This document shows positions 2,218 through 54,417 of a stretch of DNA of 64,000 nucleotides, piece by piece. Position 1 is the first letter of the stretch; each line of letters opens with the position of its first letter. Made by a program: the position numbers and the translations under genes. The notes beneath the pieces are model-generated. The model did not search any database and was not told where the DNA came from. It saw nothing but the letters and a program-made list of their open reading frames with translations. Origin of the DNA: Schmidtea polychroa (lineage: Eukaryota); contig CM097886.1 in assembly GCA_044892525.1 (NCBI GenBank), positions 158,162,001 through 158,226,000 of the forward strand, written 5' to 3'.

Positions 2218-3699
2218 ATGACTGGTTTATTAAATAATATTAATGAAAATATTGTAAGTATTTTATTTTTCATTCTATTATTAAGAAATGAAATATTAAG
2301 GATGTTAGCAAATTACATCCATTAATGCCCGAAATTATCGGCAAACAAGCTACAATTAATATTGGTACGATTGGCCATGTCGCACATGGTAAGACAACAG
2401 TCGTAAGAGCTATTTCAGGTGTTCACACAATTAGACATAAAAATGAATTAATTCGTAATATTACCATTAAATTGGGTTATGCCAATGCAAAAATTTATGA
2501 ATGCAATAATCCAGATTGTCCAAGACCAGAAAGATATTCTTCTGCTGGAAGTGCAAGTCTAGATATTTTATCCTGTCAAAGAACCAACTGTTCTGGTAAG
2601 CGTGTAGTTACTCGTCATGTTTCGTTTGTCGACTGTCCTGGTCACGACATTTTGATGGCTACAATGTTAAATGGAGCTGCTGTTATGGATGCCGCTTTGC
2701 TGTTAATTGCCGGTAATGAATCTTGTCCACAACCTCAGACCAAAGAACATTTGGCTGCAATAGATATTATGAAATTGAAACATATTTGTATTCTTCAAAA
2801 CAAAGTAGATCTTATCAAAGAACAACAAGCTCGTGATCAGCATCAGGATATTTTAAATTTTATAAATGGAACTCCAGCACAAAATGCACCGATTATTCCA
2901 ATTTCTGCTCAACTAAAATATAACATAGATGCTGTTTGTGATTATATTGTTAATAGAATCCCGGTTCCTATTAGAGATTTCAGTTCTGATCCACGAATGA
3001 TTGGTAAGATTTAAAGTTTATTGTGATAATAGGTTTAATTGAATACAATAATTTTTAGTTATTCGATCCTTTGATGTCAATAAACCTGGATGTGAGGCCG
3101 GTGAAATGAGAGGTGGTGTAGCTGGTGGAAGTATATTAAGAGGAGTGTTGAGAGTCGGTCAAAAAATCGAAATCAGACCGGGTATTATTTCCAAGGATTC
3201 AGAAAACCAATTCACTTGCAGACCTATTATTTCAACAATCATCCAATTGCGTGCTGAAGAAAACAGTTTAGATTATGCCGTCCCTGGAGGTTTGATTGCA
3301 GTAGGAACGAAAATCGATGCACAAATTTGCCGTGCTGATCGTCTTGTTGGACAGGTGTTGGGCAGTGTCGGACATTTGCCAGCCATTTTCAAAGACATTG
3401 AAATATCTTTCTATTTACTTCGACGATTGCTCGGAGTGCGAACGACTGGAACGAAAAAAGGTGCCAAAGTAGAAAAGTTACAAAAGGGAGAAATGCTAAT
3501 GGTAAATATCGGCTCATTGTCAAGTGCTGGTAAAGTTGAAGCAGTGAGGAATGATTTGGCAAAGATCAGTTTGCAAAATCCGGTTTGCACGGAAGTCGGA
3601 GAGAAAATGGCACTGAGCAGGAAAATCGACAAGCATTGGCGGTTAATTGGTTGGGGAGATATTCGGCGGGGCACTCCAATTATTCCAGCGGATCAATAG
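2218..3699 (+). CDS. EIF2S3: Translation initiation factor eIF2 gamma subunit; exons 2218-2253, 2301-3003, 3059-3699; 459 aa
   Basis: Motifs [41 protein letters not shown] (formed across the GT-AG intron 3004-3058) and C-terminal [10 protein letters not shown] 47-nt GT-AG intron (2254-2300) extends the frame upstream to ATG 2218 ([12 protein letters not shown]|[13 protein letters not shown]). Exon lengths sum to 1380 nt. Confidence 0.96.
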
Positions 3700-23100: not shown

Positions 23101-26100
23101 ATTAATATAAAATAAATAAGGTTAAAAATAACAATTAACGTTATTTTTTTTATTTATTATCAATTATCCTTTTAATAAATACAATGTCAATTGAAAAGAA
23201 ATCAGTGGTGAAAATTGACTTTGTATTTATTAAAAATCAGTAAATATATCGATGTTTTTTTGATATATAAAATTCTTGATGATCAATATCACTTGAAAAA
23301 AGGCAGTGCCAAAAATTCGTGAATATCAAAAATACATCGATATATAAAAATATTTAGAGGTCCCTTAAGAATATCGATTTTCTTGTGACAGAAAAAGAAA
23401 AATTGAGACCCAAAAGAAAATAAATAAAAACCAACTTATAATATTGCTCAGCATAGGTTTTTCCTTGCAAAACTGGATCAACGGCTTCTAAATGACTGGG
23501 ATTAGCACACACTGCTACTTTGATCATTTTATTATTTATTCTGTTGATTCTTTTATGAGACATTCCTAAATGATATTTCACATCACCACTGCCTTCATCA
23601 CTCGGCTCCAATTTTGAATCAAATTGACAAAACAATTGTTCTAATGGCTTACGGCAAACATTTGCTAAAACATTTAATCGTCCCCTAATTAATTCAAAGT
23701 TTCTGTTGGGTTTTTTGTCTGATTAAACTATTACCTGTGAGGCATTCCAATGTTAAAGCTTTCGACACCCAAATCACTCGACGCATCTATCACAGTTTTC
23801 ATTGACGGAATTAAGACTTCACAACCCTCAAGTCCAAATCTTTTTTCCGCACTCCATTTTTTTGCAAGAAATTCTTCAAATCGAGTAGATCGAATTAATC
23901 GAGCCATTATCAATCGTTTTTCTTCACCACTAAATTTCATGATACCAGGAGTTTCAAACTTCCTTCGTATCCAATCGCATTTGTTTAGATCATTAATGAA
24001 CATATATTCCACTCCAATATGACGACAGTACGCATTCTAAATTTTGAAAATTATTTAATTACAACCCAATCAAAGACTTAAATTTTATCTGTATTTCTAA
24101 ATTCCATGTTTAGCTAACTATTATATGATTTATGGGCTAGAAATAGTATAGAAATGAATATTATGAAAATTGTGTCTATAAGCTAAACTAAGACTTAAGT
24201 AAATAAAGTAATGTATTTCAGTTCTAGAATTTCTTTTCTATTATTTGCATATAGGAATAATGTTAATAGGTTTAAAAACTAAAAACTTGTATTAATATAT
24301 TAAAGAAGAGTTAAATTATTAAATAATGTTTCTAACCTTTTTCGTTGCAAAGTAGTTAATTGCATCATCAAAATTTACAGAATTTGTTATCTCACTTTTG
24401 ATAAACAGCATAGACAGATGTATAAAACGGTTTTCTGCATATGGAAGGTAATTCTTAATTAATTTTAACCGTGAAAAATTATGCTAGACTGAACCTAAGG
24501 CGTATTTGTAAATTGTAACGTAAGACCTAATAAAGCACAAAGTCAGGTTCTGCGGAACCCACCTCACGCCCCCATACATGAGTAGACAACCACACCATTA
24601 CCTTATTTGATTTTTATTTTTCTAATTCATTTAGTTGCTAAAAATAATCAAATTCTATTTGGTAAAATAACTTACATTCGCCTAAATTATAAAGATTATT
24701 TCTCACAAGATTGGTTATGTTTAACGCATTCCCGGACAAGACGGTAGTACAGTCATTTAATAAATCATCTATTATGACAAGACGAGAACGCCCGACAGCC
24801 AATGCTTTACCATCTATATAACAATTTTATGTGTGTCCATATAGAAAGATGTCTTTAAAAAAACTGATAAAAGGATATATAAAGATTCAAAATAATTTTT
24901 CATACAATGTAGTCTTTATTTTATACTTTTATCTTTCATATTCAATCTATAGATAAAAGTATGTCCGGGAATGCGTAAATAATATAATTATCACTTATCA
25001 TTTTATTTATATTACTGAATCAGACTTTTTAGTAATTTGTAATTTTAAACTTTGTAATTTTATCCATTTCTTTAAATGTTATGAGTCAATTGTTAAAAAA
25101 ATACAATTGATTTTTGGTTCTACCATTTTCTTTCAACATTTCATCTTTAAAAGAATTATCAGTCTGTTATCTTAGAAATAAATTTAAGTCTCAAATTATT
25201 TTTTTTTCATTTACGACAATAGATAATAAATTTCTTTGGTCTTTCGTAAATGTGTCAAAATGTCACTACTCAAATAATATTTTGAAAATTGAATATATGA
25301 AGCTATTTTTAGAATTTTGTTTCCGGGAAAATAAAACAATCAAAAATAAATAGACGTTTTGTTTTCATATATAAACATTATAAATGTTTTCTGTAAATAC
25401 TGTCTAATATTTTTCTCGGATTTTTGAGAAAAGTTTGTTTAGGAAATATCTAATTTAGAAATAATAATTATAATAACAAAATAATTGAGAATGGAATAAA
25501 TGAATCAGGTATTTTATTAATTATCACTTTATTTATGTTATATGCGCAATTGAAACAATACTAAATTAGAATGAACCAGTGACAGTTATTATGAACTTCG
25601 ACATTACATAAAATTAAATAATTTTAGATATCAATGCAGTATATAGTAACAAATTTACTTGATTAAAATCCAAAATACATTTTAATTAAAATAGAATTAC
25701 AATAGAGCTATTGAATATGATAAAGAAGCATTTAAAAGTGATATAGATTATATTTGATACAGTCAAATTCCACCACATCCCTTTGAGTGCCACGGACCTT
25801 TGTAAACATAGACAAAGAGCGATTGCATACACTTAAAGCATTTTGGTTAGTTAACCCTCTCAACAAACTAAAAAATTATAGAATTACTATATCCCGGCCG
25901 GTATCACATATCAAACGAACTGCTTCATAAAACTATTTGAAAAAAAAATAAAACTAAATAATATTATTTTAAAGATGAAACTTTTACTATTGATCGCTGT
26001 TTACATAATTTTACATAATTTTGCTTACAAAACAAATTGGCCTATGATATTTCTAAAACGCACAGAATATTTTTCTTTATAATTTTTTAGAACAGCAGTA

Positions 26101-29100: not shown

Positions 29101-32100
29101 ACTGTCAGAGATATTGATAAAAAATATTTGACATTTGGAAACCATAACCTAAAACACTCTAAAGACTTTGCCCCTTTCACCATTGATCTATTATTATATC
29201 TATCGATTTCTTTTTATATTCAATTGTAAATTTTGTCTTTCGAATTGTTCGAATGCATTAATTATTTAACTCTTTAAAATTTACGTCATGATTGAATTAT
29301 AAAATTTAGAAAAGAAGCTTTATATTTTTGGAAAAATGAATACTATAAAATAGTAAAAAAAATATCTTTGTTCTGCATATTATTAAAGGTTCGTAAGAAT
29401 ATAGAATGAAAAACAATTAAAACAAATCCAGTACCACAAAATCATCAAAATAGTTTTTCAAGATATACTTCACAATAACTACGTGCTAAGTATTATGGGC
29501 AAAACAAAAGCAGCAAAATGTTAAATATATAAATTAAATTATATTAATTAATATAGAATAAAAGATACAACTAAAACTTACGAAAATTGTGCTCTATAAA
29601 TATACAACAACAAATTAATGTCAACAACAAATCAAAATCATAAATGACAATATAACTTACCCAATGCTAGATAAATTAAAATTTATTAATAAATTTTTTA
29701 ACAGTTTTAAAATATAGTTTCTGAGCAAATATTTCAATGTGAGAATGTTGTATTAGATGAAAATAAAAGTGAGTGATAATACAAGGGAATTTAGTAAAAT
29801 GAATTACTGTAATCGAGTTATTTTAAGGCATATAATCCCAGGATTTCAGGAATAGCATTAGAACTTATTACATTGGGTCATCTAACTGGTCGAAGCTTAC
29901 CCATACGTTTCAGCATGCCTAATATTCGCATAATCTTTATTAGGATTATCAGAAAAATTCATAGATCTTAATCTTTTGGTATATTAACTTAAATTTTAAA
30001 GTAATAATTAACTTTGGAAAAGTAGTATTAAAAAAATCATATTTCGAACAAATAAAATTCAAAAATGATGAATATTCAAACATTATTATATTTCTATTAT
30101 TCAATTAGTGTAAAGGATACTTCATATAAATATATCTGGTTTGTGTGCTTAAGAACAAGATATTAGTGATAGAACGAACGATGTTGCAGGAGTCTGTCAA
30201 AGGAAACTTAAATTAAGCTGTAGTAGTACCATAGGTCACTCAAATTTATGGATTTTTATCAAAGGACTAGGAAAATCTTTAAGACTTATGATGTTGACTA
30301 AGAAAAATCAGTAGCACATTTTTAACATTATTACAACCATAAGCACAATGACGAAGGAATTTTGGTAAACGTTATGAATTACAAATTAGGATAATAAAGT
30401 TCAAGGTTCGTTCATAGTATCCAGTGAACTGCAGCGAACCAACATGGGATCCAAAGTATTCATTTAAAGCTTACTATTGATGGTATGGCTTCAATAATTA
30501 TATTTATTATTATTATATTCGGACCTTTCGATTTCGGGACATTTTTGAGCATAATTAAACGAGGAATAAGAAGTATTAAAATATGTATATAAAATATCTT
30601 TTCGGTAAAAATCAGATTGTCTTATTGTTGGGCTAATAAGGTACTTGAATAGGATCTACAATATTTGTTTTAGGCTATTTTTAAACATATGCAATACACA
30701 GCTATTTTATCTGAACATACAAAAATCATATATTTAATTCAATAAGAAAATAATTCCCATACTCATTATAAACCCGGAATTCACAGTAATCAAAAACTCA
30801 GATAAGATAAGAAAACCGAAATTAAAAGATCAAATAATATCAGGGGAAATATTAAAAAAACACCAGATACAAAATAGATTTTAATCTTTTTCAGCCTAGT
30901 AATTTTAGAATGTCCTTTTACAAAGAGATTTTTAAAGCAATTTATCGAATAAAAATAGTTGATCTTTTAATTTCTAAACAATCTAAATATTTTCTGCTAA
31001 GTATATCTTGACGAATAATTCAATGAATGCTTATTTCACATTAAAGATTTATAAAGAGTATATTAAGTAAACCTATTCCACTGCGTATCTAATTGCGTAT
31101 CCAGTTGATTCAAATTTTCCAATACGACACAATATATTTATTTAATTATTAACACGTTGACGGACACTCGGAACGAGTAAAGTTAAAAAATTGACACTCA
31201 ATGTTTTGAACTTTTTAGAGATGTTAGAACCATACTATTTATGTTTAAATAAACTTAGTTTGAACTGATTAAGCACTTAAACTGGGTTGCGGGTATAACA
31301 GTCATGGCGCCAGCCGAACGCGACAGACGATGTAATGTGACAATGACGGCAATTACCTTTTTATTTTTGACGGCTATCGCAGTCATGTTACATTGCGAAC
31401 TTGGCGTTAACGGTTATGGACGCAAGTGTCCGTCAACGTGTTAAACTGAGGTATCGTACTACGTCATTAAGATCACGGTGGAATAATGTCCGAGATAAAG
31501 AACTGTCTCCATATTCTGTGATAATAAGGTCTTCCACCTGCATCTCTTCTGCATATATCAAGCCAGAAAATGAAGCAAATACTGAAATAGTAATGTCTTC
31601 ACTGCCTTACTGATTCCAAATTCGGATATAGTCCATATAGTTCATTATAGTCCATAACGTCTAGCAAACACAATTAGCAATCATTATACCCTCTTCATAC
31701 CATAGACATCCTAAACTTCAAATATTTCTTCTTTCCGCTTGTCCACTGTCATATGCATTCTACACTAGTGTTGCAAACTTTATTAGGAACTCAGGACTTA
31801 TCCTAGGCGAATGCCAAAATACGAATGATATATTTGCTTTGCAATATAAGTTATATTCTTCAAGTAGTAGGATGTGGGCCATCCAGATCATGTCCCCTCC
31901 AGATCACATATACCCCCTCCCCCCCCCCCCCGGGGAAAAAATTTTTATTTTAAATAAAAGGTCAAGGTCATTTATTTTTTTTTAATTAAATTTTTTGTTT
32001 TAATTAAGTGATCCAGAGGGGACCTACTTTTTTTTCTTCCCAAAAATTAATGTTCCTGCCAACAGATTTTATTGACCGATACCTCATCTTAAAGCTCAGT

Positions 32101-33297
32101 CCAAGACCTTTCGAATGAGCTATAGGTATCATATATATCTTTAATAGTTTTAATGTTATTAACATTTAATGACCACCATCTTTTAAAGTTAAATTATTAT
32201 TATTTGTCAAAATATTATTAAGTGATCCAGAGGGGACCTACTTTTTGTCATCCCAAAGATTAATGTTCCCGCCAACATATTATATTGATCGATAGCTTAT
32301 TTTAAAGCTCTGTGCAAGACCTTTCTAAGGAGATATAGATTTCTATAATATGATGACTCATCACATTTTTAAAACAAAGACAATGACTCGTCATATTTTT
32401 AGAACGATGCCTAATATTTTTAGAATGATTACGTCATAATTTTAGAACGATGTCTATTATTTTTAGAATGATGTCTATTATTTTTAGAATGATGCCTAAT
32501 ATTTTTAGAATGATTACGTCATACTTTTAGAACGATGCCTATTATTTTTAGAATGATGTCTAATATTTTTAGAACGATTACATCATACTTTTAGAACGAT
32601 GCCTAATATTTTTAGAATGATGTCTAATATTTTAGAATGATGCCTAATATTTTTAGAATGATTACGTCATAATTTTAGAACGATGTCTATTATTTTTAGA
32701 ATGATGCCTAATATTTTTAGAATGATTACGTCATAATTTTAGAACGATGTCTATTATTTTTAGAATGATGCCTAATATTTTTAGAATGATTACGTCATAC
32801 TTTTAGAACGACGCCAAATACTTTTAGAACGATTACGTCATAATTTTAGAACGATGTCTATTATTTTTAGAATGATGCCTAATATTTTTAGAACTATTAC
32901 GTAATCGATGTCTAATATTTTTAGAACGATGCCAAATATTTTTAGAACGATGCCAAATATTTTTAGAACGATGCCAAATATTTTTAGAGCGATTACGTAA
33001 TACTTTTAGAACGATGCCTAATATTTTTAGAACGATGTCTATTATTTTTAGAACGATGCCTAATATTTTTAGAACGATGCCTAATATTTTTAGAACGATG
33101 CCAATTATTTTTAGAATGATTACATCATACTTTTAGAACGATGTCTAATATTTTTAGAATTAATAATTTTGTTTTAATTATCGATGATTATATAATTTGT
33201 TTAAATCATTGATTATATAATTCTTTTGTTTTAATTATAGAATACGTAATAATATAATTTTGTTTAAATCGTTGATTACATATTATTATTTTCTAAG

Positions 33298-33342
<45 letters not shown>

Positions 33343-33720
33343 CATATATATATACAGAGTCTATCCGACAAAATATTCTGTCCCCCTAAGGGTACTGCAC
33401 ACAAGGGCACTACTCACATGGGTAATTGTCACAAGGGTACTACTCACATTCAACAAGTCACAAGGGTACTGCTCACATTCAACATGTCTCAAAGGGTATA
33501 ATATAATTATTATTAAATTCCGACCAACTTAAATCAATGAAGGGGTAGAACAAAATATATTACGTTGCGGTATTTTAAAATTTAAATATATTTTAAAAAC
33601 GTATTTTGATACTAAAGTTTACTTAATTAACAAAGACATAATTATTGCACATGCTTTGCATAAATATTATTATTTTTTAAATTTTCAATATTTTCTTTTA
33701 AAGTATTAACACGCGCGGGA

Positions 33721-33756
<36 letters not shown>

Positions 33757-34032
33757 ATTATTATTATTATTATTATCATTATTAGTGAAAACCTAAAATA
33801 TTTTTTTACACACACACACACAACCCCTCAACCATTATTATTATTATCAATATTAAAAACCTAAAATATTTTCTACACACATGCACAACTCATTAACCAT
33901 TATTATTATCATTATTAGTGAAAACCTAAAATATGGTTTACACACACACACACACGACCCATTAACAATTATTTGTATCAATATTAGTGAAAACCTAAAA
34001 TATCTTCTACACACATATACAACCCATTAAAC

Positions 34033-34074
<42 letters not shown>

Positions 34075-34445
34075 GCAAATATTAGTCAAAAACATAAAAA
34101 CACACACTCAACCAATTAACAATTATTATTATCAATATTATTATTATTGCAAATACTAGTCAAAAACTTAAAATTTTATTTTTTTTTTTACACACACACA
34201 CAACCCATTAACCATTATTATTATTGCAAATATTAGTCAAAAACATAAAAACACTCATAAACCATTATTATTATCAATATTCGTGAAAACCTCAAATATT
34301 TTTTACACACACACACACAACCCATTAACCATTATTATTATTGCAAATATTAGTCAAAAACATAAAAACACTCATAAACCATTATTATTATCAATATTAG
34401 TGAAAACCTCAAATATTTTTTACACACATATACAACCCATTAAAC

Positions 34446-34508
<63 letters not shown>

Positions 34509-37500
34509 ATTATTATTATTATTAGTGAAAAAACCTTAAATAATTTTTACATACTAAGTTATGGGGTAGAGTATTATTATGTTTGCAGTATTCTGTGTTT
34601 GCCTTTACAGGAAGTTGTCAATAAGGAGCGATAATTTTACACACACATCCTATATACACATACCTTGTTTAACATGGGTGTATATACTCCTAGTCTATCC
34701 GACAAAATATTCTGTCCCCCTATGGGTATTGCTCACAAAGGTACTACTCACACTCAACATATCGCAAGGGTATATTAATTATGGTTAGTAAATAAAACCT
34801 ATCACACACACTTTTATATTTAAACTATAAAAATCAAGACAAGAGAGGACAAGGCAAAGTTTATGCATTTATTATTGCCAGGCCTAATGAGCAGTGACCA
34901 AATATCTGTGCCTGAAAGACACGGTGGATATTTGTTCGCGTCCACAAGGGTCGTCTGTGCCTCCCCCAAGTGGGGTCAAAAGAACCTGGGCATTATAGTT
35001 TTCCGTACGGAACATTACGCCTAGCATGGGTAGTCAACTACCAGTATATTCGAAACGTATAATTTCAAAATACATGCGTCATTGGCACTACAACCAAATT
35101 AATTAATGTTTTCACTAACACAAATATATATTTACAGAGGCCTCCCACTAGTTGGATTACAACCGCCCACCACGACGATCAGCTTGTAAATATATATTAA
35201 TTAAGGGATAAAGAGGACCCACCCAACCCTATTATATTTAATTTACAAATTTTTCTCGCTCTTCTGCTGGTAATCTATCTCAAAATTATCATCTCCATCG
35301 GGCCATTTGGAATACATCTTGCGAATTGGACGTATTTCTTAGTTTCTGATGCGGCGTCAACTATCATTGCTAAAATTTATATTGATTTAAAAGCAATTAA
35401 CTTACATTATCTAGCATTTTATCGTCACAGGCTTGATAAATTAGGCAACTGTTATTTGTGGTATACTTTTTCAATGTCATTTCCCACCATAAAACACCGA
35501 TACCTAAATATAATATATATATTTTAAAGAATTAATTCATGTCTTACATTAATAATAATATTCTTCAGGTAGTACTTTACAATATCTAATTGATAAAACA
35601 TCGGTTTTTTCCCATTTTTCTTGACATTCGTTGAAAGTTTACATAATTTAAGTCTGATAATTCATGTTGAAGGACACCCCCAATCAGCTAATTCATTTAA
35701 GAAATCCCGAACATAGCAATGTTTCACCATTTTGTCTGGTTCATTTTCTTCTATAATTCATGTTTTAATAAGAAATTTCTAAATCCAGAACATAAGTCAT
35801 TTAGTGTTTCACCATTTTGTTCATCTTCTTCATAATCATATAATTCATTTTCTTCATTACTAAGTAAAATAATTAAAATATTTTAGTAAATTCTTTATTT
35901 ACTTACTTTATGGATACTAAAACGAAAGAAATAACGTTATATCAGAATTATATTTAAATAATTTAAATTTAGTTATTTAAACATATTTAAACAATTTAGT
36001 TATTTAAGCATATTTAAACATTAACATTATTATATAGTATAATTTTATATAATATTATAATTTTATGTATTGTAAATTTAATATATCCTTCATTTAATTT
36101 TTTAAATTCAAAAATTTATAATGAAGATTCTTTGAATTAAAAAATATTCTGTTAGTATTTCCAGGCAGAAAACAACGAATTCAATAATTAAAATCTTAAT
36201 TTTCATGTTGTTAGGGTTGTGGCCAGAAGTTAATCGCCATCTAATCGTTTGTTCTCAATTTCGCTCATTTTTGTTCAAAACATTCAGGTGAGTTGTTATC
36301 TGGAAAGTTTCTTTGAGCTCAGTTTTGTTAAAACACTCACGGTATTTTTGAGGGACGTGACACTGGAAATAAATTAACAATGGGTGGTCTTGCATACATG
36401 TTGTTGGTTTGAACTGTTGATTTATTTTAGAAATATGTATATTAAAAACATTTAAGGTATCATTCAGTAAAATAATATAGTATTTTTGAGTATGTTTTAG
36501 TTGATTTATAAATAACAGTATTTTGATATATCAATAAAGACCATATACTCCGAGTTTATCCGACAAAATATTCAGTCCCCCTATAGGTATTGGTAGCAAG
36601 GGTACTGGTCACACTCAACATGTCGCAATATTAATCATTTAGAAATTCTTAGGTAAGATAATCAGAAATTTGTGAATATTTTAAATGTAACTTTACACTT
36701 ATGTCGAGCGACTAATTTATTGGTTAACTTTGTAGTCATTTAAAGCAAAAGGTAATTTATTCATCTAATGTTCGTTACAATAGTTAATAATATGAGAAAA
36801 ACATGGTCATTATTCATTGATAATTTTAAATTCTTTATCATTTGGAGTAAATTTGTTTGAGGCAAAAATATTTAAAGGAGTCATAATAGAAATATGGTTA
36901 TCATTTATCCAATTAAGGGGCTTATTAGTTAGAAATATAAAGTAACAATTCTTTTCTAATTTAATTAGATGATCATTAGACGTAGTATATCTTTGCGAGA
37001 AATTTAAGATGTTTGAGTAACCAAAACATGGATATTTTGTGCGATAAATTTATGAATATTGGTTAATTTTCTCATTTTTAGTGATTTAAAATAATATTTA
37101 GCAAAGGTAATTTGGCAAAATATCACTTATCCATCCGATAATAATATTCCTTCAATAGATTTTACCTTTAATATTCAACCGATTTAATTTCTAATTAAAA
37201 TCATAAAATTCCTTCAATAAAGATCAATTTTCTTTAACCGTTGTCGATTTCCAACTTTTAAGTCAATATTTCTCAAGTTTTGTCACTGATGTCCCCACAA
37301 TGAATAAAATAACTTCTTAAGTAAAATAATTTAAAGCAGTAACCTTTGATATCAATCCCAATTAATTCTAAAGATTTCAAATATTTCATTGTCAAAACCA
37401 AGTAAATTGATCATTAACCCTAAAAGACTTAATAAAACAGTGGATAATTAATAAAAAACTGGTTCTAAAACATAAATCTAAATTACTGTGCAAAGACATT

Positions 37501-40500
37501 CATCACAACCTAATAAACCTCTAAAACGATATAATTTCACAGGAACTATTATTAATTCATAGCTAAATACTGACTATTTCCCTTTAAAATTTTACCAATA
37601 AGATCATTGTCGATTTAAATAGAGATTTCAAACATTTCCACCTTAACCGATCCCTCACCAAATATTTCTACCATTTTAAAAACCCCCTTAAAAATCATAT
37701 ATTACCATTTTAACTGAACCTTCACTAATTCCATCCGGCTATAATATATCAGCCCTTTAATATATCAATTCTCTTAAAATCCATAGAAAATTCTTCAAAA
37801 TATGAATTGTATTTAATTGTTACAGACATTCTTCCATTGAAATAATTTAGTAGCTAAATTCAAAGAGTCCACTAAAAGATCAAAATTCATTAAAATAAAT
37901 ATTTAACCACATGTATCATCAAATACCTAACTAGAGATGATAATATCTCATTGATTGATCATAATTCTTCATCGATTCAACTAATTATAGCCATTACAAC
38001 ATGATATATCTTTCAAACTAAATTTCAGTATATTTTACAATAATTTTCAAGTAGATTTCAAATATATCATCATCATGAAAAAATTAGCTGGTTTCAACTT
38101 TAGATTTTCAATATTTTAAAGTTCATCAATGTGTAAATATTCTTAGAAAAATATATGAAAAATTATTTAGTCAAATTATCATTACAAAGTCATCATCAAA
38201 ATTAATTTTTATTTAAAATTTAAAAACAAGTCAATAAAACATAGCAAATTATCAAGAAATTAATTAAATTTATCTTAGAATTAACACTAAACCTTAAATA
38301 TTCTTTCAATTAACATAAAATTCACAAAAAATGTTAGTAAAATCCCGCTAACTCTAAAAAATTACCAATGAATTTATTGCCAAATAATAACCAAATATTT
38401 GCCTAAATAAAACACAACAGTACCTTTACGACCAGTACCCTTACGAGCAGTACCAATTGTGAACAGTACCCATAGAGGGAGAAAATATCTTGTCGGATAA
38501 ACTCAGAGTATATATAATAAAACGAATTAACAATAACTCCATCAAATTGAATCAGTCAAATTAACACAAATTTTGATAAAAAATCTTATTCTAAAATGGT
38601 AAGAAGCGTAAAGTCGAAAGATAATTTTAATAACACCGAGATAAATTAACAATATTATTCTCAGGTGGTAAGAATCTTCATTAAAGTTAGGAAATTATAA
38701 GAACTACCAATTGCTATAAAATATTTAAACGAATTTAGTTTTGTTGTTTTATAACTTTTGGTTATATTTGAGTGAGTTTTCGAGTATACCTTTTAACTTT
38801 CAGTGCTCATTTTCATTAAAAAGAGTAATGTATCTTAAATTATCTTTTGGAATATTTGTTTTTGAAATATTTAGTGTAAAATAGTAAATTTAATAATAAA
38901 TTGTTAATATTAAAGGACTTAATCAAAATTTAAAATCGGAATTTATCATAATTACTCTGTCAAATACAATTCACGGTTTCTTATGTAATAAAATAATCAT
39001 TTGGGGATTAAATACTTTATTAAATAAAAGTTTATCACATTATTAAAATATTTTAATTCGTTAGTAGCTCATATAATAGAAATAATTTTATATATCCTCA
39101 TCACTTATAGCCGCCGACTCTCGATTTCCCACTAATTATTATCATTTATATTCTCCTGGCAAATATTTCTTTTAAAATTGTATTAAATATTTTTTTATTA
39201 AAGTGAACGTTTTTTATGAATTTTTATGAAATTTATGAATTTTATGAAATAATTTTAAATAAATACAATTAATATATATCCATGCCACTTCTCAGTATAT
39301 TTTCATTAACCTTCCATAATCCAATAATGAATTATTCTAACACTTATTTTAACCCCTTTGAAGTTTATTATTAATTTATCACAGAATAATAAATAATTTC
39401 CTAACTTTAATGAAGATTCTTACCACCTGAGAATAATATTGTTAATTTATCTCGGTGTTATTAAAATTATCTTTCGACTTTACGCTTCTTACCATTTTAG
39501 AATAAGATTTTTTATCAAAATTTGTGTTAATTTGACTGATTCAATTTGATGGAGTTATTGTTAATTCGTTTTATTATATATACTCTGAGTTTATCCGACA
39601 AGATATTTTCTCCCTCTATGGGTACTGTTCACAATTGGTACTGCTCGTAAGGGTACTGGTCGTAAAGGTACTGGTGTGTTTTATTTAGGCAAATTTTTGG
39701 TTATTATTTAGCATTAAATTCGTTGGTAATTTTTAGAGTTAGCGGGATTTTACTAACATTATTACTAACCTTTTTGTGAATAATTGAAAGAATATTTTGA
39801 AATTTAACGTTTTAGTGTTAATTCTAAGACAAATTTAATTAATTTCTTGATAATTTGCTATATTTTATTGACTTGTTTTTAAATTTACTTTTAAATAATA
39901 ATATTTTTAATGACAGTTAGGTTAATAATTAGAGTTTTTACAATAATCAAGTTATTATTATTTAATTTTTGTAAAAATTATTGTAAAATATACTGAAATT
40001 TGTGATTTTGAAAGATATATCACGTTATAATTGCTATATAATTAGTTGAATCGATGAAGAATTATGATCAATCAATGAGATATTATCATCTCTAGTTAGG
40101 TATTTGATGGTAAATGTGGTGAAATATTTGTAGAAAATATTGATTTTAGTAAATTTTGATCTTTTAGTGGACTCTTTGAATTTAGATACTAAATTATTTC
40201 AATGGAAGGATGTCTGTAACAAATAAATACAATTCATATTTTGAAGAATTTTCTATGGATTTTAAGAGAATTGATATATTAAAGGGCTGATATATTATAG
40301 CCGGATGGAATTAGTGAAGGTTCAGTTAAAATGGTAATATATGATTTTTAAGGGGGTGTTTAAAATGGTAGAAATATTTGGTGAGGGATCGGTTAAGGTG
40401 GAAATGTTTGAAATCTCTATTTAAATCGACAATGATCTTATTGGTAAAATTTTAAAGGGAAATAGTCAGTATTTAGCTATGAATTAATAATAGTTCCTGT

Positions 40501-43500
40501 GAAATTATATCGTTTTAGAGGTTTATTAGGTTGTGATGAATGTCTTTGCACAGTAATTTAGATTTATGTTTTAGAACCAGTTTTTTATTAATTATCCACT
40601 GTTTTATTAAGTCTTTTAGGGTTAATGATCAATTTACTTGGTTTTGACAATGAAATATTTGAAATCTTTAGAATTAATTGGGATTGATATCAAAGGTTAT
40701 TGCTTTAAATTATTTTACTTAAGAAGTTATTTTATTCATTGTGGGGACATCAGTGACAAAACCTGAGAAATATTGACTTAAAAGTTGGAAATCGACAACG
40801 GTTAAAGAAAATTGATCTTTATTGAAGGAATTTTATGATTTTAATTAGAAATTAAATCGGTTGAATATTAAAGGTAAAATCTATTGAAGGAATATTATTA
40901 TCGGATGGATAAGTGATATTTTGCCAAATTACCTTTGCTAAATATTATTTTAAATCACTAAAAATGAGAAAATTAACCAATATTCATAAATTTATCGCAC
41001 AAAATATCCATGTTTTGGTTACTCAAACATCTTAAATTTCTCGCAAAGATATACTACGTCTAATGATCATCTAATTAAATTAGAAAAGAATTGTTACTTT
41101 ATATTTCTAACTAATAAGCCCCTTAATTGGATAAATGATAACCATATTTCTATTATGACTCCTTTAAATATTTTTGCCTCAAACAAATTTACTCCAAATG
41201 ATAAAGAATTTAAAATTATCAATGAATAATGACCATGTTTTTCTCATATTATTAACTATTGTAACGAACATTAGATGAATAAATTACCTTTTGCTTTAAA
41301 TGACTACAAAGTTAACCAATAAATTAGTCGCTCGACATAAGTGTAAAGTTACATTTAAAATATTCACAAATTTCTGATTATCTTACCTAAGAATTTCTAA
41401 ATGATTAATATTGCGACATGTTGAGTGTGACCAGTACCCTTGCTACCAATACCTATAGGGGGACTGAATATTTTGTCGGATAAACTCGGAGTATATGGTC
41501 TTTATTGATATATCAAAATACTGTTATTTATAAATCAACTAAAACATACTCAAAAATACTATATTATTTTACTGAATGATACCTTAAATGTTTTTAATAT
41601 ACATATTTCTAAAATAAATCAACAGTTCAAACCAACAACATGTATGCAAGACCACCCATTGTTAATTTATTTCCAGTGTCACGTCCCTCAAAAATACCGT
41701 GAGTGTTTTAACAAAACTGAGCTCAAAGAAACTTTCCAGATAACAACTCACCTGAATGTTTTGAACAAAAATGAGCGAAATTGAGAACAAACGATTAGAT
41801 GGCGATTAACTTCTGGCCACAACCCTAACAACATGAAAATTAAGATTTTAATTATTGAATTCGTTGTTTTCTGCCTGGAAATACTAACAGAATATTTTTT
41901 AATTCAAAGAATCTTCATTATAAATTTTTGAATTTAAAAAATTAAATGAAGGATATATTAAATTTACAATACATAAAATTATAATATTATATAAAATTAT
42001 ACTATATAATAATGTTAATGTTTAAATATGCTTAAATAACTAAATTGTTTAAATATGTTTAAATAACTAAATTTAAATTATTTAAATATAATTCTGATAT
42101 AACGTTATTTCTTTCGTTTTAGTATCCATAAAGTAAGTAAATAAAGAATTTACTAAAATATTTTAATTATTTTACTTAGTAATGAAGAAAATGAATTATA
42201 TGATTATGAAGAAGATGAACCAGACAAAATGGTGAAACACTAAATGACTTATGTTCTGGATTTAGAAATTTCTTATTAAAACATGAATTATAGAAGAAAA
42301 TGAACCAGACAAAATGGTGAAACATTGCTATGTTCGGGATTTCTTAAATGAATTAGCTGATTGGGGGTGTCCTTCAACATGAATTATCAGACTTAAATTA
42401 TGTAAACTTTCAACGAATGTCAAGAAAAATGGGAAAAAACCGATGTTTTATCAATTAGATATTGTAAAGTACTACCTGAAGAATATTATTATTAATGTAA
42501 GACATGAATTAATTCTTTAAAATATATATATTATATTTAGGTATCGGTGTTTTATGGTGGGAAATGACATTGAAAAAGTATACCACAAATAACAGTTGCC
42601 TAATTTATCAAGCCTGTGACGATAAAATGCTAGATAATGTAAGTTAATTGCTTTTAAATCAATATAAATTTTAGCAATGATAGTTGACGCCGCATCAGAA
42701 ACTAAGAAATACGTCCAATTCGCAAGATGTATTCCAAATGGCCCGATGGAGATGATAATTTTGAGATAGATTACCAGCAGAAGAGCGAGAAAAATTTGTA
42801 AATTAAATATAATAGGGTTGGGTGGGTCCTCTTTATCCCTTAATTAATATATATTTACAAGCTGATCGTCGTGGTGGGCGGTTGTAATCCAACTAGTGGG
42901 AGGCCTCTGTAAATATATATTTGTGTTAGTGAAAACATTAATTAATTTGGTTATAGTGCCAATGACGCATGTATTTTGAAATTATACGTTTCGAATATAC
43001 TGGTAGTTGACTACCCATGCTAGGCGTAATGTTCCGTACGGAAAACTATAATGCCCAGGTTCTTTTGACCCCACTTGGGGGAGGCACAGACGACCCTTGT
43101 GGACGCGAACAAATATCCACCGTGTCTTTCAGGCACAGATATTTGGTCACTGCTCATTAGGCCTGGCAATAATAAATGCATAAACTTTGCCTTGTCCTCT
43201 CTTGTCTTGATTTTTATAGTTTAAATATAAAAGTGTGTGTGATAGGTTTTATTTACTAACCATAATTAATATACCCTTGCGATATGTTGAGTGTGAGTAG
43301 TACCTTTGTGAGCAATACCCATAGGGGGACAGAATATTTTGTCGGATAGACTAGGAGTATATACACCCATGTTAAACAAGGTATGTGTATATAGGATGTG
43401 TGTGTAAAATTATCGCTCCTTATTGACAACTTCCTGTAAAGGCAAACACAGAATACTGCAAACATAATAATACTCTACCCCATAACTTAGTATGTAAAAA

Positions 43501-43535
43501 TTATTTAAGGTTTTTTCACTAATAATAATAATAAT

Positions 43536-43604
<69 letters not shown>

Positions 43605-43975
43605 GTTTAATGGGTTGTATATGTGTGTAAAAAATATTTGAGGTTTTCACTAATATTGATAATAATAATGGTTTATGAGTGTTTTTATGTTTTTGACTAA
43701 TATTTGCAATAATAATAATGGTTAATGGGTTGTGTGTGTGTGTGTAAAAAATATTTGAGGTTTTCACGAATATTGATAATAATAATGGTTTATGAGTGTT
43801 TTTATGTTTTTGACTAATATTTGCAATAATAATAATGGTTAATGGGTTGTGTGTGTGTGTAAAAAAAAAAATAAAATTTTAAGTTTTTGACTAGTATTTG
43901 CAATAATAATAATATTGATAATAATAATTGTTAATTGGTTGAGTGTGTGTTTTTATGTTTTTGACTAATATTTGC

Positions 43976-44023
<48 letters not shown>

Positions 44024-44304
44024 GTTTAATGGGTTGTATATGTGTGTAGAAGATATTTTAGGTTTTCACTAATATTGATACAAATAATTGTTAATGGGTC
44101 GTGTGTGTGTGTGTGTGTAAACCATATTTTAGGTTTTCACTAATAATGATAATAATAATGGTTAATGAGTTGTGCATGTGTGTAGAAAATATTTTAGGTT
44201 TTTAATATTGATAATAATAATAATGGTTGAGGGGTTGTGTGTGTGTGTGTAAAAAAATATTTTAGGTTTTCACTAATAATGATAATAATAATAATAATAA
44301 TAAT

Positions 44305-44340
<36 letters not shown>

Positions 44341-44720
44341 TCCCGCGCGTGTTAATACTTTAAAAGAAAATATTGAAAATTTAAAAAATAATAATATTTA
44401 TGCAAAGCATGTGCAATAATTATGTCTTTGTTAATTAAGTAAACTTTAGTATCAAAATACGTTTTTAAAATATATTTAAATTTTAAAATACCGCAACGTA
44501 ATATATTTTGTTCTACCCCTTCATTGATTTAAGTTGGTCGGAATTTAATAATAATTATATTATACCCTTTGAGACATGTTGAATGTGAGCAGTACCCTTG
44601 TGACTTGTTGAATGTGAGTAGTACCCTTGTGACAATTACCCATGTGAGTAGTGCCCTTGTGTGCAGTACCCTTAGGGGGACAGAATATTTTGTCGGATAG
44701 ACTCTGTATATATATATATG

Positions 44721-44771
<51 letters not shown>

Positions 44772-47700
44772 CTTAGAAAATAATAATATGTAATCAACGA
44801 TTTAAACAAAATTATATTATTACGTATTCTATAATTAAAACAAAAGAATTATATAATCAATGATTTAAACAAATTATATAATCATCGATAATTAAAACAA
44901 AATTATTAATTCTAAAAATATTAGACATCGTTCTAAAAGTATGATGTAATCATTCTAAAAATAATTGGCATCGTTCTAAAAATATTAGGCATCGTTCTAA
45001 AAATATTAGGCATCGTTCTAAAAATAATAGACATCGTTCTAAAAATATTAGGCATCGTTCTAAAAGTATTACGTAATCGCTCTAAAAATATTTGGCATCG
45101 TTCTAAAAATATTTGGCATCGTTCTAAAAATATTTGGCATCGTTCTAAAAATATTAGACATCGATTACGTAATAGTTCTAAAAATATTAGGCATCATTCT
45201 AAAAATAATAGACATCGTTCTAAAATTATGACGTAATCGTTCTAAAAGTATTTGGCGTCGTTCTAAAAGTATGACGTAATCATTCTAAAAATATTAGGCA
45301 TCATTCTAAAAATAATAGACATCGTTCTAAAATTATGACGTAATCATTCTAAAAATATTAGGCATCATTCTAAAAATAATAGACATCGTTCTAAAATTAT
45401 GACGTAATCATTCTAAAAATATTAGGCATCATTCTAAAATATTAGACATCATTCTAAAAATATTAGGCATCGTTCTAAAAGTATGACGTAATCGTTCTAA
45501 AAATATTAGACATCATTCTAAAAATAATAGGCATCGTTCTAAAAGTATGACGTAATCATTCTAAAAATATTAGGCATCATTCTAAAAATAATAGACATCA
45601 TTCTAAAAATAATAGACATCGTTCTAAAATTATGACGTAATCATTCTAAAAATATTAGGCATCGTTCTAAAAATATGACGAGTCATTGTCTTTGTTTTTA
45701 AAATGTGATGAGTCATCATATTATAGAAATCTATATCTCCTTAGAAAGGTCTTGCACAGAGCTTTAAAATAAGCTATCGATCAATATAATATGTTGGCGG
45801 GAACATTAATCTTTGGGATGACAAAAAGTAGGTCCCCTCTGGATCACTTAATAATATTTTGACAAATAATAATAATTTAACTTTAAAAGATGGTGGTCAT
45901 TAAATGTTAATAACATTAAAACTATTAAAGATATATATGATACCTATAGCTCATTCGAAAGGTCTTGGACTGAGCTTTAAGATGAGGTATCGGTCAATAA
46001 AATCTGTTGGCAGGAACATTAATTTTTGGGAAGAAAAAAAAGTAGGTCCCCTCTGGATCACTTAATTAAAACAAAAAATTTAATTAAAAAAAAATAAATG
46101 ACCTTGACCTTTTATTTAAAAAAAAATTTTTTCCCCGGGGGGGGGGGAGGGGGTATATGTGATCTGGAGGGGACATGATCTGGATGGCCCACATCCTACT
46201 ACTTCTTCATGTTCTGTTTAAGAGTATATCCCTCACATACATAACAATATGAATTTTGATGGTTTTAACTAAATTTTCTTGATAATTTCGTATGACATGA
46301 ACAATTGTTGCACAGGTTTTGAATAACTACTAACTAAACAGGTAAGTAAACAAATGTACAAAATTATAATTATTTTTGTAAACAACCGTGAGAATGTATT
46401 ATATTCTATGAAAAATAACATATTGTACAATATAATTTATAAATAGTACTATATTAACTTCTATTATTTGTAGTTTTCCAATGAATGACACCTAATGCGT
46501 ATGGATTTATTAACATTTTAGTTATTACAAACCATAAATATGTGAAAGTAGTTATCTGAAAAACTAGGGACAAATCGATTAAACTGAAGTCATTTTCCAA
46601 ATCAATGGCATGAAAAATATCCAAATTTCAAAATTCAATGTTATAAGCAAATTTAATTCTATAAATTGGTAGATAATTAGTAGTAAAAAATGCAGAAACC
46701 CCTAAAAGTCAAAAAGATAAAACAAAATTATATCAATAATTTTCGTCATTATTCCAAGAGATTGGAAAATAAATATAACGATTAAAGCTAACAGTTCTTA
46801 ACCCCTTGAACTCGAGGTCATTTTTTGAAAAAGATTTTCTTCTCAAAATCATTCATTTATTTCAAAAATGCTTTTTAAGTGTTTTACAGTTTGCTATAAC
46901 TCAAAACAATTGTATATGCACAACCATACATCACATTTAACACATTAATATATCGATTCCTTTTTGCATTTTTGTCCTCTGTGTTGTATTAGAACACATG
47001 CAACAACTCCTTCAAACATTTTATTATAAAATTATAAATAGGCCAAGAAACGTTGAATGACATAAAAAAGTAAATATTTACAATATTAGTTTTTATTTTG
47101 TTGTGCCTAATAAAAATGTTGCCTAATAAAAATACCAAAATAATTATAATTTTTTAATATAAATTATAAATCGATTTTAAAGATATAATATTTTTTTATA
47201 ATTCTAATGCCTGCATGAATTCAAATAAATACGGAAGCAGAGTTCAACTCTTATGTAAACTTTATGGTTGTTAACAAAAATTTACCTGATTTCGATACAA
47301 AATCACAACGAAATTTATTTTTAAAAAAAAGCAACTAGAATGAAGATATTAAATAACAGAATTTTTATTAAAATGGAAAATAATATTTTGCTAGAATATA
47401 TTGAAGATTACAATGATCCAAAGACAATTTTATGCGTTGAAGAGGTCCATTTAGCTTGGCATAGGGGTCTAAAGGCTATTTATAAAGAATTGCAACGCAG
47501 ATATTATAATGTTGTGCCTAATAAAAATGTATCGATTTTGTATCGAAATCAGGTAAATTTCCGTTAACCACAAAGTTTACACAAAGTTTCCGTAATTATT
47601 TGAATTCTTGCAGGCATTAGAATTATAAAAAAAATATTATATCTTTAAAATAGATTTAAAATTTATATTAAAAAATTATAATTATTTTGGTATTTTTATT

Positions 47701-53662: not shown

Positions 53663-54417
53663 GTAATAATAATTAGGTAATAATTGTATTACATTTCACC
53701 CTAATTAGTATACAGTAATATTCGGATCTTTAATAAACTTGCCATGCTATACATATTCGAATAATAATAATAATAATCCATGAAAAATTAAAAAGCCACC
53801 TACAATTAATAAGTAATTCAAAATCCTATTAATAAATTTATTCTTATCATAATATTTGTTAAATAAATAAAACAGTTTAATGATAGTATTTAAATTAAAT
53901 ATGGCTGAATAAATTTTAAATTAAATATTCAAATTATAATTCAAAAGAGAAAAATAATTAAAACCTGATATGATCTTATAATTGCTTGGACGGCTAAATG
54001 TTCTTCAATTGTACTTTGATCAACAATCTCATGGGTTACAGAACTACTAACAGTTGGAACAGGTGTACCCATAACAGTTGGAAAATACTGATGTTTAGGT
54101 AAACTATACATAAAGTTCGGAGGTGGAGAAAATGCTTGTCCAACAGCTGCTCCTTTACTTACTTGACTAAAATACACATTCCAAGACTTAAACAAATGTT
54201 ACTACTCCAAGAATCCAAATCGATAAATTACTTTATGAACACTTGCAGGATTCTCTAACCAAGAATTGTACATTTCTTCTATATAAACCGACGAGCCTCC
54301 GTTAAGAAACGATTCGGCGCTAGCTGAGCTATACTTAACAGAATGTTTGCAAATTGAAAACCCATAATTAGAAAGTAATGATCTATGCTTTTGAGCGAGC
54401 AAACGTATTTTATACAT
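14194..54417 (-). CDS. OGDH: Mitochondrial 2-oxoglutarate dehydrogenase E1. Exons: 54417-54232, 54186-53965, [49253-49151 or 48430-48337], 27997-27897, 24036-23735, 23684-23436, 20076-19926, 19881-19753, 19706-19503, 19451-19277, 19229-19006, 17624-17274, 16193-16068, 16016-15855, 15804-15557, 14299-14194
   Basis: All junctions are GT-AG and phase-consistent; total 3039 nt (1012 aa) with exon 3A. Motifs: [31 protein letters not shown], ThDP motif [10 protein letters not shown]...[70 protein letters not shown]. Confidence 0.96.
15413..16465. repeat. Pair of dispersed ~140-bp direct repeats (about 15413-15545 and 16321-16465) in neighbouring OGDH introns
   Basis: Shared AAATCCATGA..GAGTTAACAAATCTGTAAACA...GCTAATAAATTTTTTTAATATTTTATTTAAAGTTGATAACAAAAACAAAATCA. 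Confidence 0.85.
16465..17040. repeat. Pair of ~150-180-bp direct repeats (about 16465-16620 and 16855-17040)
   Basis: Shared TTATTGACAACAAATATTTTTAATTGATTTTAATATAATGTATCAAATTTAAATCGTTATTTTAATTAATTTAAT and AATTCCTTAAACTATTCACCATTGAT. Confidence 0.85.
18297..18900. repeat. ~197-bp tandem duplication plus degenerate partial copies in an OGDH intron
   Basis: TATTATTAATCCATCCTATCCA(C/T)TGGTAGATTATTTTC begins both units (about 18297 and 18494). Weaker CATTGG..ATTATTT copies follow at about 18740 and 18855. Confidence 0.85.
21052..21452 (+). pseudogene. Decayed S/Q/N-rich reading frame, unidentified
   Basis: Codon-like run ([57 protein letters not shown]...) broken by TAA stops and a frameshift. 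Confidence 0.35.
21749..22177 (+). pseudogene. WDFY1/2-like (WD40-FYVE) N-terminal fragment with a frameshift, nested antisense in an OGDH intron
   Basis: RKPDLLNKF...[14 protein letters not shown], then a frameshift near 21865-21878, then [30 protein letters not shown]...[20 protein letters not shown]...HVARVT...WLLSCSKDK. Matches recalled WDFY2 RKPILL...VRVWLKRDSGQYWPSVYH...IGLDNGTISEF. Runs into an N gap. Confidence 0.8.
22201..22363. other. Assembly gap (others at 50807-50934, 55956-56239, 58373-58500)
   Basis: Runs of N. Confidence 1.
22384..22425 (-). ncRNA. Degenerate (probably inactive) hammerhead ribozyme, same family as 49520-49561
   Basis: Minus strand ATAGTT CTGATGA GAGG CAAAA GCTT CAAAC TAA TC TACTAT, versus intact ATAGTA CTGATGA GAGC CAAAA GCTC GAAAC TAG TC TACTAT. 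Confidence 0.8.
24330..24430 (-). mobile_element. hAT transposase C-terminal (dimerisation) remnant
   Basis: [28 protein letters not shown] matches the hAT/ZMYM-type terminus L..L.IE...+DFD.+I..FA..K.R. Confidence 0.6.
24725..24975. mobile_element. 251-bp MITE, piggyBac-like
   Basis: 14-bp perfect TIR CGCATTCCCGGACA / TGTCCGGGAATGCG, flanked by TTAA on the left and TAAA on the right. Confidence 0.7.
26848..27222. mobile_element. 375-bp hAT-type MITE
   Basis: TIRs CAATGGTGGGTAAA / TTTGCCCACCACTG (12 of 14 match); 8-bp TSD TACTAGTG / TATTAGTG (7 of 8 match). Confidence 0.75.
27236..27446. mobile_element. 211-bp pogo/Tigger-type MITE
   Basis: 24-bp perfect TIR CCGTATTAGCCCGAATATAACGCG, TA on both sides. 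Confidence 0.85.
30130..30300 (+). mobile_element. Mutator-like (MULE) transposase C-terminal remnant
   Basis: [34 protein letters not shown] resembles the MULE-type RTNN..EG.H..L......HP.+W.FI..L segment. Confidence 0.55.
31153..31440. mobile_element. 288-bp piggyBac-type MITE
   Basis: 16-bp perfect TIR CACGTTGACGGACACT, TTAA on both sides. Confidence 0.88.
31600..31862 (-). mobile_element. Chapaev-like DNA transposase remnant, distal half (proximal half at 46204-46290)
   Basis: ...[59 protein letters not shown]...LYPNLESVR. Matches the YFG..LGDQDK.WAPH.VC..C...L.QW..G...F..PMVWREP...DCYFC consensus, which I recall as Chapaev3-type (family name less certain than the TE call). Confidence 0.7.
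32395..33160. repeat. Minisatellite, about 36 units of 20-22 bp, left arm
   Basis: Constant TTTTAGAA(C/T)GAT followed by one of three tails: GCCTAATA, TACGTCATA or GTCTATTA. Confidence 0.95.
33295..34525. repeat. (TAT)n / (CA)n composite repeat modules, left arm (mirror about 43515-44770)
   Basis: Several (TAT)n tracts interleaved with ~60-bp AATATTAGT(G/C)AAAAC...ACACACAC..AACCCATTAAC modules. Confidence 0.9.
33357..33396 (+). promoter_or_regulatory. Conserved 40-bp motif, copy 1 of 8 (others at about 34691+, 36552+, 38466-, 39587+, 41448-, 43314-, 44665-); function unknown
   Basis: GAGT(C/T)TATCCGACAA(A/G)ATATT..(G/C)TCCC(C/T)CTA..GGTA(C/T)T, each copy followed by degenerate AAGGGTACT repeats. 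The regulatory role is inferred only. Confidence 0.5.
44910..45675. repeat. Mirror copy of the minisatellite, right arm
   Basis: Reverse complement of 32395-33160 (ATC(G/A)TTCTAAAA units). Confidence 0.95.
46204..46290 (-). mobile_element. Chapaev-like DNA transposase remnant, proximal half (N-terminal CxxC)
   Basis: Reads [25 protein letters not shown] and continues in frame into 31856 when the palindrome and one TSD copy are removed. Confidence 0.7.
47121..47704. mobile_element. Element with ~180-bp imperfect TIRs around an integrase zinc-binding remnant (Ginger/TDD-like)
   Basis: 47121-47304 is the reverse complement of 47534-47704, with indels. The central ORF has [25 protein letters not shown], the His half of an integrase H2C2 domain. 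Confidence 0.6.
48337..48430 (-). CDS. OGDH: OGDH alternative exon 3B ([31 protein letters not shown])
   Basis: AATAG acceptor ending at 48431, GTAAGT donor at 48336, phase 0 to 1, 94 nt. Paralogous RGH...LDPLG motif. Confidence 0.88.
49151..49253 (-). CDS. OGDH: OGDH alternative exon 3A ([34 protein letters not shown])
   Basis: AG acceptor at 49254-49255, GT donor at 49150, phase 0 to 1, 103 nt. Confidence 0.92.
49520..49561 (+). ncRNA. Minimal type I hammerhead ribozyme (Penelope/retrozyme type)
   Basis: Stem I ATAGTA/TACTAT; core CTGATGA (49526-49532); stem II GAGC-CAAAA-GCTC; GAAA; palindromic stem III CTAG; GTC cleavage triplet ending at 49555. Confidence 0.9.
50218..50800 (-). pseudogene. 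FNBP4-like (WW-domain) gene fragment with in-frame stops, nested in OGDH intron 2
   Basis: WW half-domain [17 protein letters not shown], acidic [12 protein letters not shown], and [16 protein letters not shown], similar to recalled FNBP4 QIGELANTLTSKFEFL. Two in-frame stops (DS*SS, KC*ES). An N gap lies directly upstream. Confidence 0.55.
51850..52010 (-). mobile_element. Possible Helitron Rep-helicase linker remnant
   Basis: GSHTI, then a frameshift, then [17 protein letters not shown], resembling SHT+.RL.VHLP.QQ.+.Y..G.E. Confidence 0.4.
52380..52560 (-). mobile_element. hAT dimerisation-domain remnant
   Basis: [33 protein letters not shown] matches the hATC motif S+A..ER.FS.......RS.L...T+. 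Confidence 0.7.
52883..52977. repeat. 16-bp tandem repeat, about 6 units, two alternating variants
   Basis: GATTATTGATTTTCAT alternates with GATTATTGATTGTCG(C/T). Confidence 0.9.

Follow-up and report, generated by a model that had tools for sequence, protein, structure and literature searches.

What kind of mobile element is a 14.3-kb DNA palindrome that holds no genes, and what could have put it where it lies? The question is raised by a 64,000-nucleotide stretch of the Schmidtea polychroa genome (assembly GCA_044892525.1, contig CM097886.1, positions 158,162,001 to 158,226,000 of the forward strand), hereafter the window, in which such an element occupies positions 31863-46203 as counted from the first letter of the stretch. 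We propose that it is a non-autonomous, foldback-type derivative of the Maverick/Polinton class that was moved in trans. Our confidence in this proposal is about evenly balanced and goes no higher because all of it rests on the ends and the target-site duplication (TSD) of one copy. The features that carry the argument are the following, the two arms being the terminal inverted repeats (TIRs) of the element.

31863-46203, no strand: the whole element, 14,341 bp with a guanine-plus-cytosine (GC) content of 26%, from a repeat finder and self-BLAST.
31863-38698, plus strand: left arm, 6,836 bp, from the repeat finder, self-BLAST and global alignment.
39393-46203, minus strand: right arm, an inverted copy of the left arm, 6,811 bp, on the same basis.
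38699-39392, no strand: unique spacer of 694 bp, without internal symmetry.
31857-31862, no strand: left copy of the 6-bp TSD, TCTTCA.
46204-46209, no strand: right copy of the 6-bp TSD, TCTTCA.
31863-31870, plus strand: left terminal reiteration AGTAGTAG, which is (AGT)2 followed by AG, the motif as in PMC8097293.
46196-46203, plus strand: right terminal reiteration CTACTACT, which is CT followed by (ACT)2.

The two inverted arms (6,836 and 6,811 bp) make up 95% of the element, whose GC content we treat as equal to the 27% of the 64-kb window. The repeat finder and self-BLAST align 31863-38047 with 46203-39974 (6,233 columns, 98.9% identity) and 38216-38698 with 39886-39393 (94.3%), and arm complementarity is 100% up to the spacer edge. 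An earlier reading made from the letters of this stretch, to which we refer as the sequence-only reading, had described arms of about 6.8 kb around a 694-bp spacer, and both programs reproduce these lengths and their coordinates exactly. The element starts with AGTAGTAGG and ends with CCTACTACT; its left terminus, AGTAGTAGGATGTGGGCC..., has its exact reverse complement in the right terminus, ...GGCCCACATCCTACTACT. The left-end 8-mer AGTAGTAG occurs once within the element, and across the window the terminal sequence is present at the two outer ends of the element only.

The same earlier reading had placed a perfect 6-bp repeat, TCTTCA, on both flanks of these termini, and the flanking sequence, read directly, has both the termini and the repeat. 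Given the local base composition, a match at 6 of 6 flanking positions would arise by chance with a probability of about 7e-4, and AGTAGT would stand at a given position with a probability of about 3e-4. An inverted repeat that lies between direct repeats bears the signature of transposition. In-place formation of an inverted duplication without transposition was rejected by reasoning, since template switching back into the arm would reproduce the left flank as its complement and would not yield a direct repeat. Other boundaries can be drawn around the same sequence. A 7-bp TSD (TTCTTCA) needs a right end that is one base shorter and thus has asymmetric termini, a direct repeat of 9 or 10 bp at the boundaries is impossible from the flanking sequence, and moving the boundaries to TA..TA loses the flanking duplication. 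The perfect 6-bp duplication with symmetric ends is the simplest boundary reading.

These boundaries give the element the outward features of a Maverick. Among vertebrate Mavericks, the commonest end motif is 5'-(AGT)2//(ACT)2-3' with a perfect 6-bp TSD, and (AG)3//(CT)3 is another conserved reiterated motif; the reiterations have been interpreted as serving a jumping-back step in protein-primed replication (PMC8097293). Intact copies measure 12.7-24.6 kb, a size that is apparently constrained, and have TIRs of 46-1,447 bp with a mean of 402 (PMC8097293). A 6-bp TSD is characteristic of Polinton more generally (PMC10045372, PMC8969392). Since retroviral-type integrases make 6-bp duplications, the element may have been inserted as a unit by an integrase of this type supplied in trans by an autonomous Maverick/Polinton, and its terminal trinucleotide reiteration would permit jumping-back during protein-primed replication by the polymerase of the helper.

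If the element was moved in trans, it would not need genes of its own, and none were recognized. All ORFs (open reading frames) of at least 70 aa in the element are low-complexity translations of microsatellites, and in the left arm and spacer none of the 20 longest stretches free of stop codons has a Pfam match above the curated cutoff. The longest open stretch lies inside the range of composition-preserving shuffles, and those ranked 2-5 modestly exceed the 95th percentile, an excess that we attribute to stop-free tandem repeats and microsatellites. The claim that the element has no real ORF is thus borne out by the ORF list, the Pfam scans and the shuffle test. Nor are genes hidden by an unusual genetic code, since the host genes use the standard code, in which the two exons of a neighbouring eIF2-gamma gene are open for 229 and 197 codons. 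The first of two protein-level searches with open arm stretches gave no match, and the sole match of the second, P0121, was rejected as spurious, a 21-residue match having been counted seven times in a tandem-repeat protein. An exact-product look-up of two element ORFs and two host ORFs found none on record. The make-up of the arms does not look like decayed coding sequence. With no ORF and no Pfam match, the element is not an autonomous member of the Maverick/Polinton class, whereas a non-autonomous derivative needs no genes.

What the arms contain in place of genes can be followed from the outside inwards. The outermost 50 bp or so are unique end sequence with a doubled CCAGATCA motif, and a C-run and a G-run come next. 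Further in, the following features succeed one another, with arrays called by Tandem Repeats Finder (TRF) where this is stated.

32003-32343, plus strand: subterminal direct duplication with a spacing of about 213 bp (copies 32003-32130 and 32217-32343, 83-88% identical).
32393-33159, plus strand: subterminal array in which a 21-bp unit is repeated in tandem about 36 times, overlaid by higher-order periods of 43, 64 and 85 bp (TRF).
44910-45676, minus strand: right-arm mirror of the 21-bp array (TRF).
33348-33433, plus strand: first copy of a module of about 90 bp.
34682-34767 and 36543-36628: further direct copies of the 90-bp module.
38457-38513: inverted copy of the 90-bp module.
33722-34524, plus strand: (TTA)n microsatellites, with (CA)n and tandem repeats of 65, 117 and 134 bp set between them (TRF).
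35117-35183, minus strand: fragment resembling the 5' domain of signal recognition particle (SRP, 7SL) RNA (RF00017, 29.5 bits, model positions 1-44).
42861-42959, plus strand: mirror of the SRP-RNA-like fragment in the right arm (RF00017, 29.6 bits, E 8e-6).

All copies of the 90-bp module, 3 direct and 1 inverted, are mirrored in the right arm. The SRP-RNA-like match spans about 45 nt of the 5' (Alu) domain of metazoan SRP RNA and lies within a GC-richer patch at 34.86-35.2 kb; in the left arm it has an E-value of 1e-4 in an 8.3-kb search and 9e-6 in a 0.7-kb search, with a score of 29.5 bits that is far below the gathering score of 70. On its sequence, this scrap could be a captured piece of a host RNA gene or a fragment of a short interspersed nuclear element headed by 7SL. 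The build of the arms matches that of the internally repetitive TIRs of foldback transposons.

The resemblance between the arms is not uniform along their length. When the arms are aligned globally over their full length (6,836 against 6,811 bp), 42 mismatches and 30 indels appear, almost all within 37276-38417. The outer 5.4 kb (31863-37275) has 3 substitutions and 9 small indels, which are mostly length differences in microsatellites or homopolymers; 6 mismatches follow in 37276-37862, and the inner 0.28 kb next to the spacer (38418-38698) is identical between arms. The most diverged stretch lies between these regions.

37863-38362, plus strand: differs from its partner at about 39735-40140 by 28 mismatches and 21 indels.

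The differences, which include a 5-bp and a 13-bp indel, show that the arms are two separate physical sequences. No single formation event accounts for this uneven profile of identity.

A route to such a structure is available from other transposable elements. Gene loss and TIR elongation are considered to produce the foldback shape independently in separate lineages (PMC4079207), and in Galileo the longest TIRs are found in non-autonomous copies, having grown by tandem repeats and recruited inner sequence (PMC3573991). The hairpin shape of the present element most likely arose as in other foldback elements, through gene loss and elongation of the TIRs, in the course of which tandem repeats would have expanded and both arms would have taken up inner or host sequence. 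The 7SL-like scrap fits the recruitment of host sequence. If intramolecular pairing or gene conversion acted on the arms, it could have kept them nearly identical; alternatively, the element may be very young.

Several observations weigh against assigning the element to Mavericks. The arms, at 6.8 kb, are about 5 times as long as the longest vertebrate Maverick TIR (1,447 bp) and about 3 times as long as the roughly 2-kb TIRs of butterfly polintons (10.1101/2025.02.07.637071). The end motif is documented for vertebrates, whereas the host here, an AT-rich metazoan, is invertebrate-like. One further base pair, A at the left end and T at the right, can be added to the inverted repeat, which would turn the ends into AAG..CTT and the duplication into a 4-bp CTTC, and the 8-bp TSD that the earlier reading had offered as an alternative does exist, matching at 7 of 8 positions with one mismatch. 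Both the TSD length and the end motif are taken from a single insertion. Neither the element nor the open stretches scanned elsewhere in the window, which comprised all ORFs of at least 85 aa and those shorter pieces that looked most like coding sequence, gave a signal of pPolB, integrase, capsid, ATPase or protease, and in these window stretches no transposase domain, of Maverick or of another kind, was found. None of the collections searched, which were viral, metagenome and prokaryote DNA together with protein-level searches, yielded a relative. In particular, the terminal 22-mer, the 21-bp unit and the 90-bp module have no exact match in viral contigs, JGI metagenomes or prokaryote genomes, and BLAST with the arm and spacer and with the terminal 30-mer gave no further copy in the window. 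What stands of the Polinton interpretation put forward by the sequence-only reading is therefore a genuine gene-less insertion with Maverick-type ends, TSD and length; an autonomous element with these ends and a second copy were not found in these searches.

If the AGTAGT end were a coincidence, then the element could instead be a foldback-type member of a cut-and-paste DDE superfamily, known or as yet unrecognized, with a TSD of 6 (or 4, 7 or 8) bp. We consider this unlikely, yet worth serious weight. Long internally repetitive TIRs, a short middle and the lack of an ORF are what such elements have, most foldbacks are assigned to Mutator and Galileo to the P superfamily (PMC4079207, PMC3573991), and a single copy leaves the boundary ambiguous by one base. 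The TSDs are a poor fit, being 8-10 bp in Mutator-type foldbacks and Tetris (PMC4079207) and 7 bp in Galileo (PMC3573991), and IS3EU/GingerRoot elements, which usually do have a 6-bp TSD, end in TA..TA or occasionally TG..CA (PMC10045372). Membership of IS3EU/GingerRoot does not fit, the TSD length agreeing but TA..TA boundaries abolishing the duplication, and neither does a Mutator-type foldback of the FB/Tetris kind, for which no 9-10-bp repeat can be drawn and the 8-bp repeat is mismatched, though the arm architecture is that of such elements. A DDE origin would also leave the exact match to one published 6-nt Maverick end motif to the small chance given above. A different possibility keeps the Maverick ends and changes the order of events: an ordinary non-autonomous element with short TIRs would have inserted, and the palindrome would then have grown in place by gene conversion within the element or by template switching at a central inverted repeat that was already there. 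The discrete inner inverted repeat at the spacer (342 nt, 99%), with the diverged block outside it, looks like a pre-existing central hairpin, and the nearly identical outer arms fit recent conversion. In this scenario, conversion or copying would have had to run over about 6 kb and stop exactly at the termini of the element, and the product would still be Maverick-ended, so that the scenario differs from the explanation we favour in timing only; we regard it as improbable. Long, nearly perfect palindromes are also a known class of artefact in long-read and whole-genome-amplified libraries, and a fold-back chimeric read must be considered. Both junctions are clean and bear the target duplication, the flanks are unique and part of one collinear gene, which makes an assembly chimera unlikely, and the arms differ in substitutions, indels, microsatellite lengths and the diverged block while enclosing an asymmetric unique spacer. 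An artefact of assembly or amplification is, on this evidence, highly improbable.

A viral origin of the palindrome, which the sequence-only reading had suggested, deserves consideration alongside these. In this scenario the element would be a defective Polinton-virus genome of the copy-back (snap-back) or inverted-dimer kind, comparable to a defective-interfering genome, whose non-coding arms served as stuffer, whose doubled length was favoured by its proximity to the capacity of the helper capsid, and which was then integrated in trans. Both ends are identical and each has the full end motif, and 14.3 kb falls within the range of intact Mavericks (PMC8097293). In the related adenoviruses, gene-less vectors of less than about 27 kb undergo rearrangements that bring them closer to wild-type length, and one gene-less genome of 15 kb was packaged as direct and inverted dimers (PMC4189039). 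The centre of the element has no relic of a terminus, as a one-ended copy-back predicts and a tail-to-tail dimer does not; for the same reason, a tail-to-tail dimer of a two-ended element was rejected, as were two nested or adjacent copies, given that the terminal sequence is confined to the two outer ends. On the other hand, 6.8 kb of arm without a trace of a viral gene means that the parent would already have been non-coding, neither the uneven arm identity nor the 694-bp unique spacer is predicted by a single copy-back, and arms made of tandem repeats are typical of foldback TIRs that were elongated gradually. Selection on length cannot be judged from one copy. The adenovirus precedent and the length speak for the snap-back, capsid-length idea, and the arms' lack of decayed viral genes and their uneven identity speak against it; it is one among several ways in which the shape could have come about, and we rate it as rather doubtful. 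The gradual elongation of a non-autonomous Maverick/Polinton remains the explanation that we prefer.

The window contains genes for eIF2-gamma, a dual-specificity phosphatase and the E1 component of 2-oxoglutarate dehydrogenase (OGDH). OGDH is on the minus strand at 15553-54438 and is at least 39 kb long. Its exons for the C-terminal, transketolase-like and E1 parts occupy 15.5-24.0 kb, one of them (23734-24036) having a match in human OGDH with E 4e-49, and an N-terminal motif lies within 54205-54438. The element sits in the OGDH intron region, with exons collinear on either side, and there is no paralogous empty site within the window. If the intron is transcribed, it could fold into a 6.8-kb hairpin in the primary transcript of an essential gene, and such a hairpin would be a plausible source of small RNAs against the element family. 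Elsewhere in OGDH introns, at 18254-18944 and 16322-17038, there are short tandem or dispersed direct repeats with periods of about 196 and 385 bp. The eIF2-gamma gene (2325-3699, plus strand) has two long exons and an intron of about 90 bp, and in a small tree a fragment of its GTPase groups with a trematode sequence and an unnamed protein from the Logan assembly, a weak hint of a flatworm host; the eIF2-gamma search covered proteins short of full length, owing to its length filter. No homologues were found for one lineage-specific ORF of the window. Planarians combine a very low GC content with abundant, transcribed Mavericks.

A separate repeat lies at 47101-47697. It resembles a miniature inverted-repeat transposable element of about 600 bp, with 81-bp TIRs that are 96% complementary and the same 17-bp sequence ATATTAGTTTTTATTTT on both flanks, which is unusually long for a duplication. 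A stretch of its interior resembles Integrase_H2C2 very weakly, with an E-value of 0.089 that fails to reach the cutoff for a match.

Mavericks/Polintons stand between transposons and viruses, and their replication and spread have been inferred mostly from gene content. If the present element is indeed a non-autonomous derivative moved in trans, then the ends alone suffice for integration, and the foldback architecture, so far tied to Mutator- and P-type transposons, also arises in the self-synthesising class. The lengths, arm identities and duplications of such copies would bear on the length constraint and hence on a capsid stage; were the snap-back origin to be correct, the element would provide evidence at the level of sequence for an encapsidated, length-selecting stage in animal Polintons.

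Non-autonomous Polintons and Polintons with long TIRs are already known, and the gene-less, nearly all-palindromic form is apparently undescribed: no gene-less, almost wholly palindromic or foldback Polinton of this architecture was found in a literature search whose coverage was incomplete and did not include Repbase. The known systems each share a part of its features. IS3EU/GingerRoot elements have the 6-bp TSD in common with it, whereas its ends are AG..CT and not TA..TA (PMC10045372). Drosophila FB, Tetris (PMC4079207) and Galileo (PMC3573991) have long, internally repetitive TIRs with tandem arrays and a short non-coding middle, as it does; their TSDs are 8-10 or 7 bp and their TIRs reach about 1.3 kb, in contrast to its 6 bp, its 6.8-kb arms and its Maverick-like ends. 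In the gene-less, undersized adenovirus genomes (PMC4189039), a protein-primed linear double-stranded DNA replicon likewise gives rise to an inverted duplication near the length that fills the capsid, whereas these inverted dimers came from vector production, were unintegrated and derived from a two-ended genome, and the present element lacks relics of internal ends. Butterfly polintons (10.1101/2025.02.07.637071) also have unusually long TIRs and internal sequence that is doubled in both arms; theirs hold functional capsid and protease genes and a coding core is kept, whereas this element is non-coding and coreless. In comparison to vertebrate Mavericks (PMC8097293), it is without pPolB, integrase, capsid, ATPase and protease genes and is 95% TIR, but it is like them in its perfect 6-bp TSD, its (AGT)2//(ACT)2 ends, its possession of TIRs and its length, 14,341 bp lying inside the 12.7-24.6 kb over which intact copies range.

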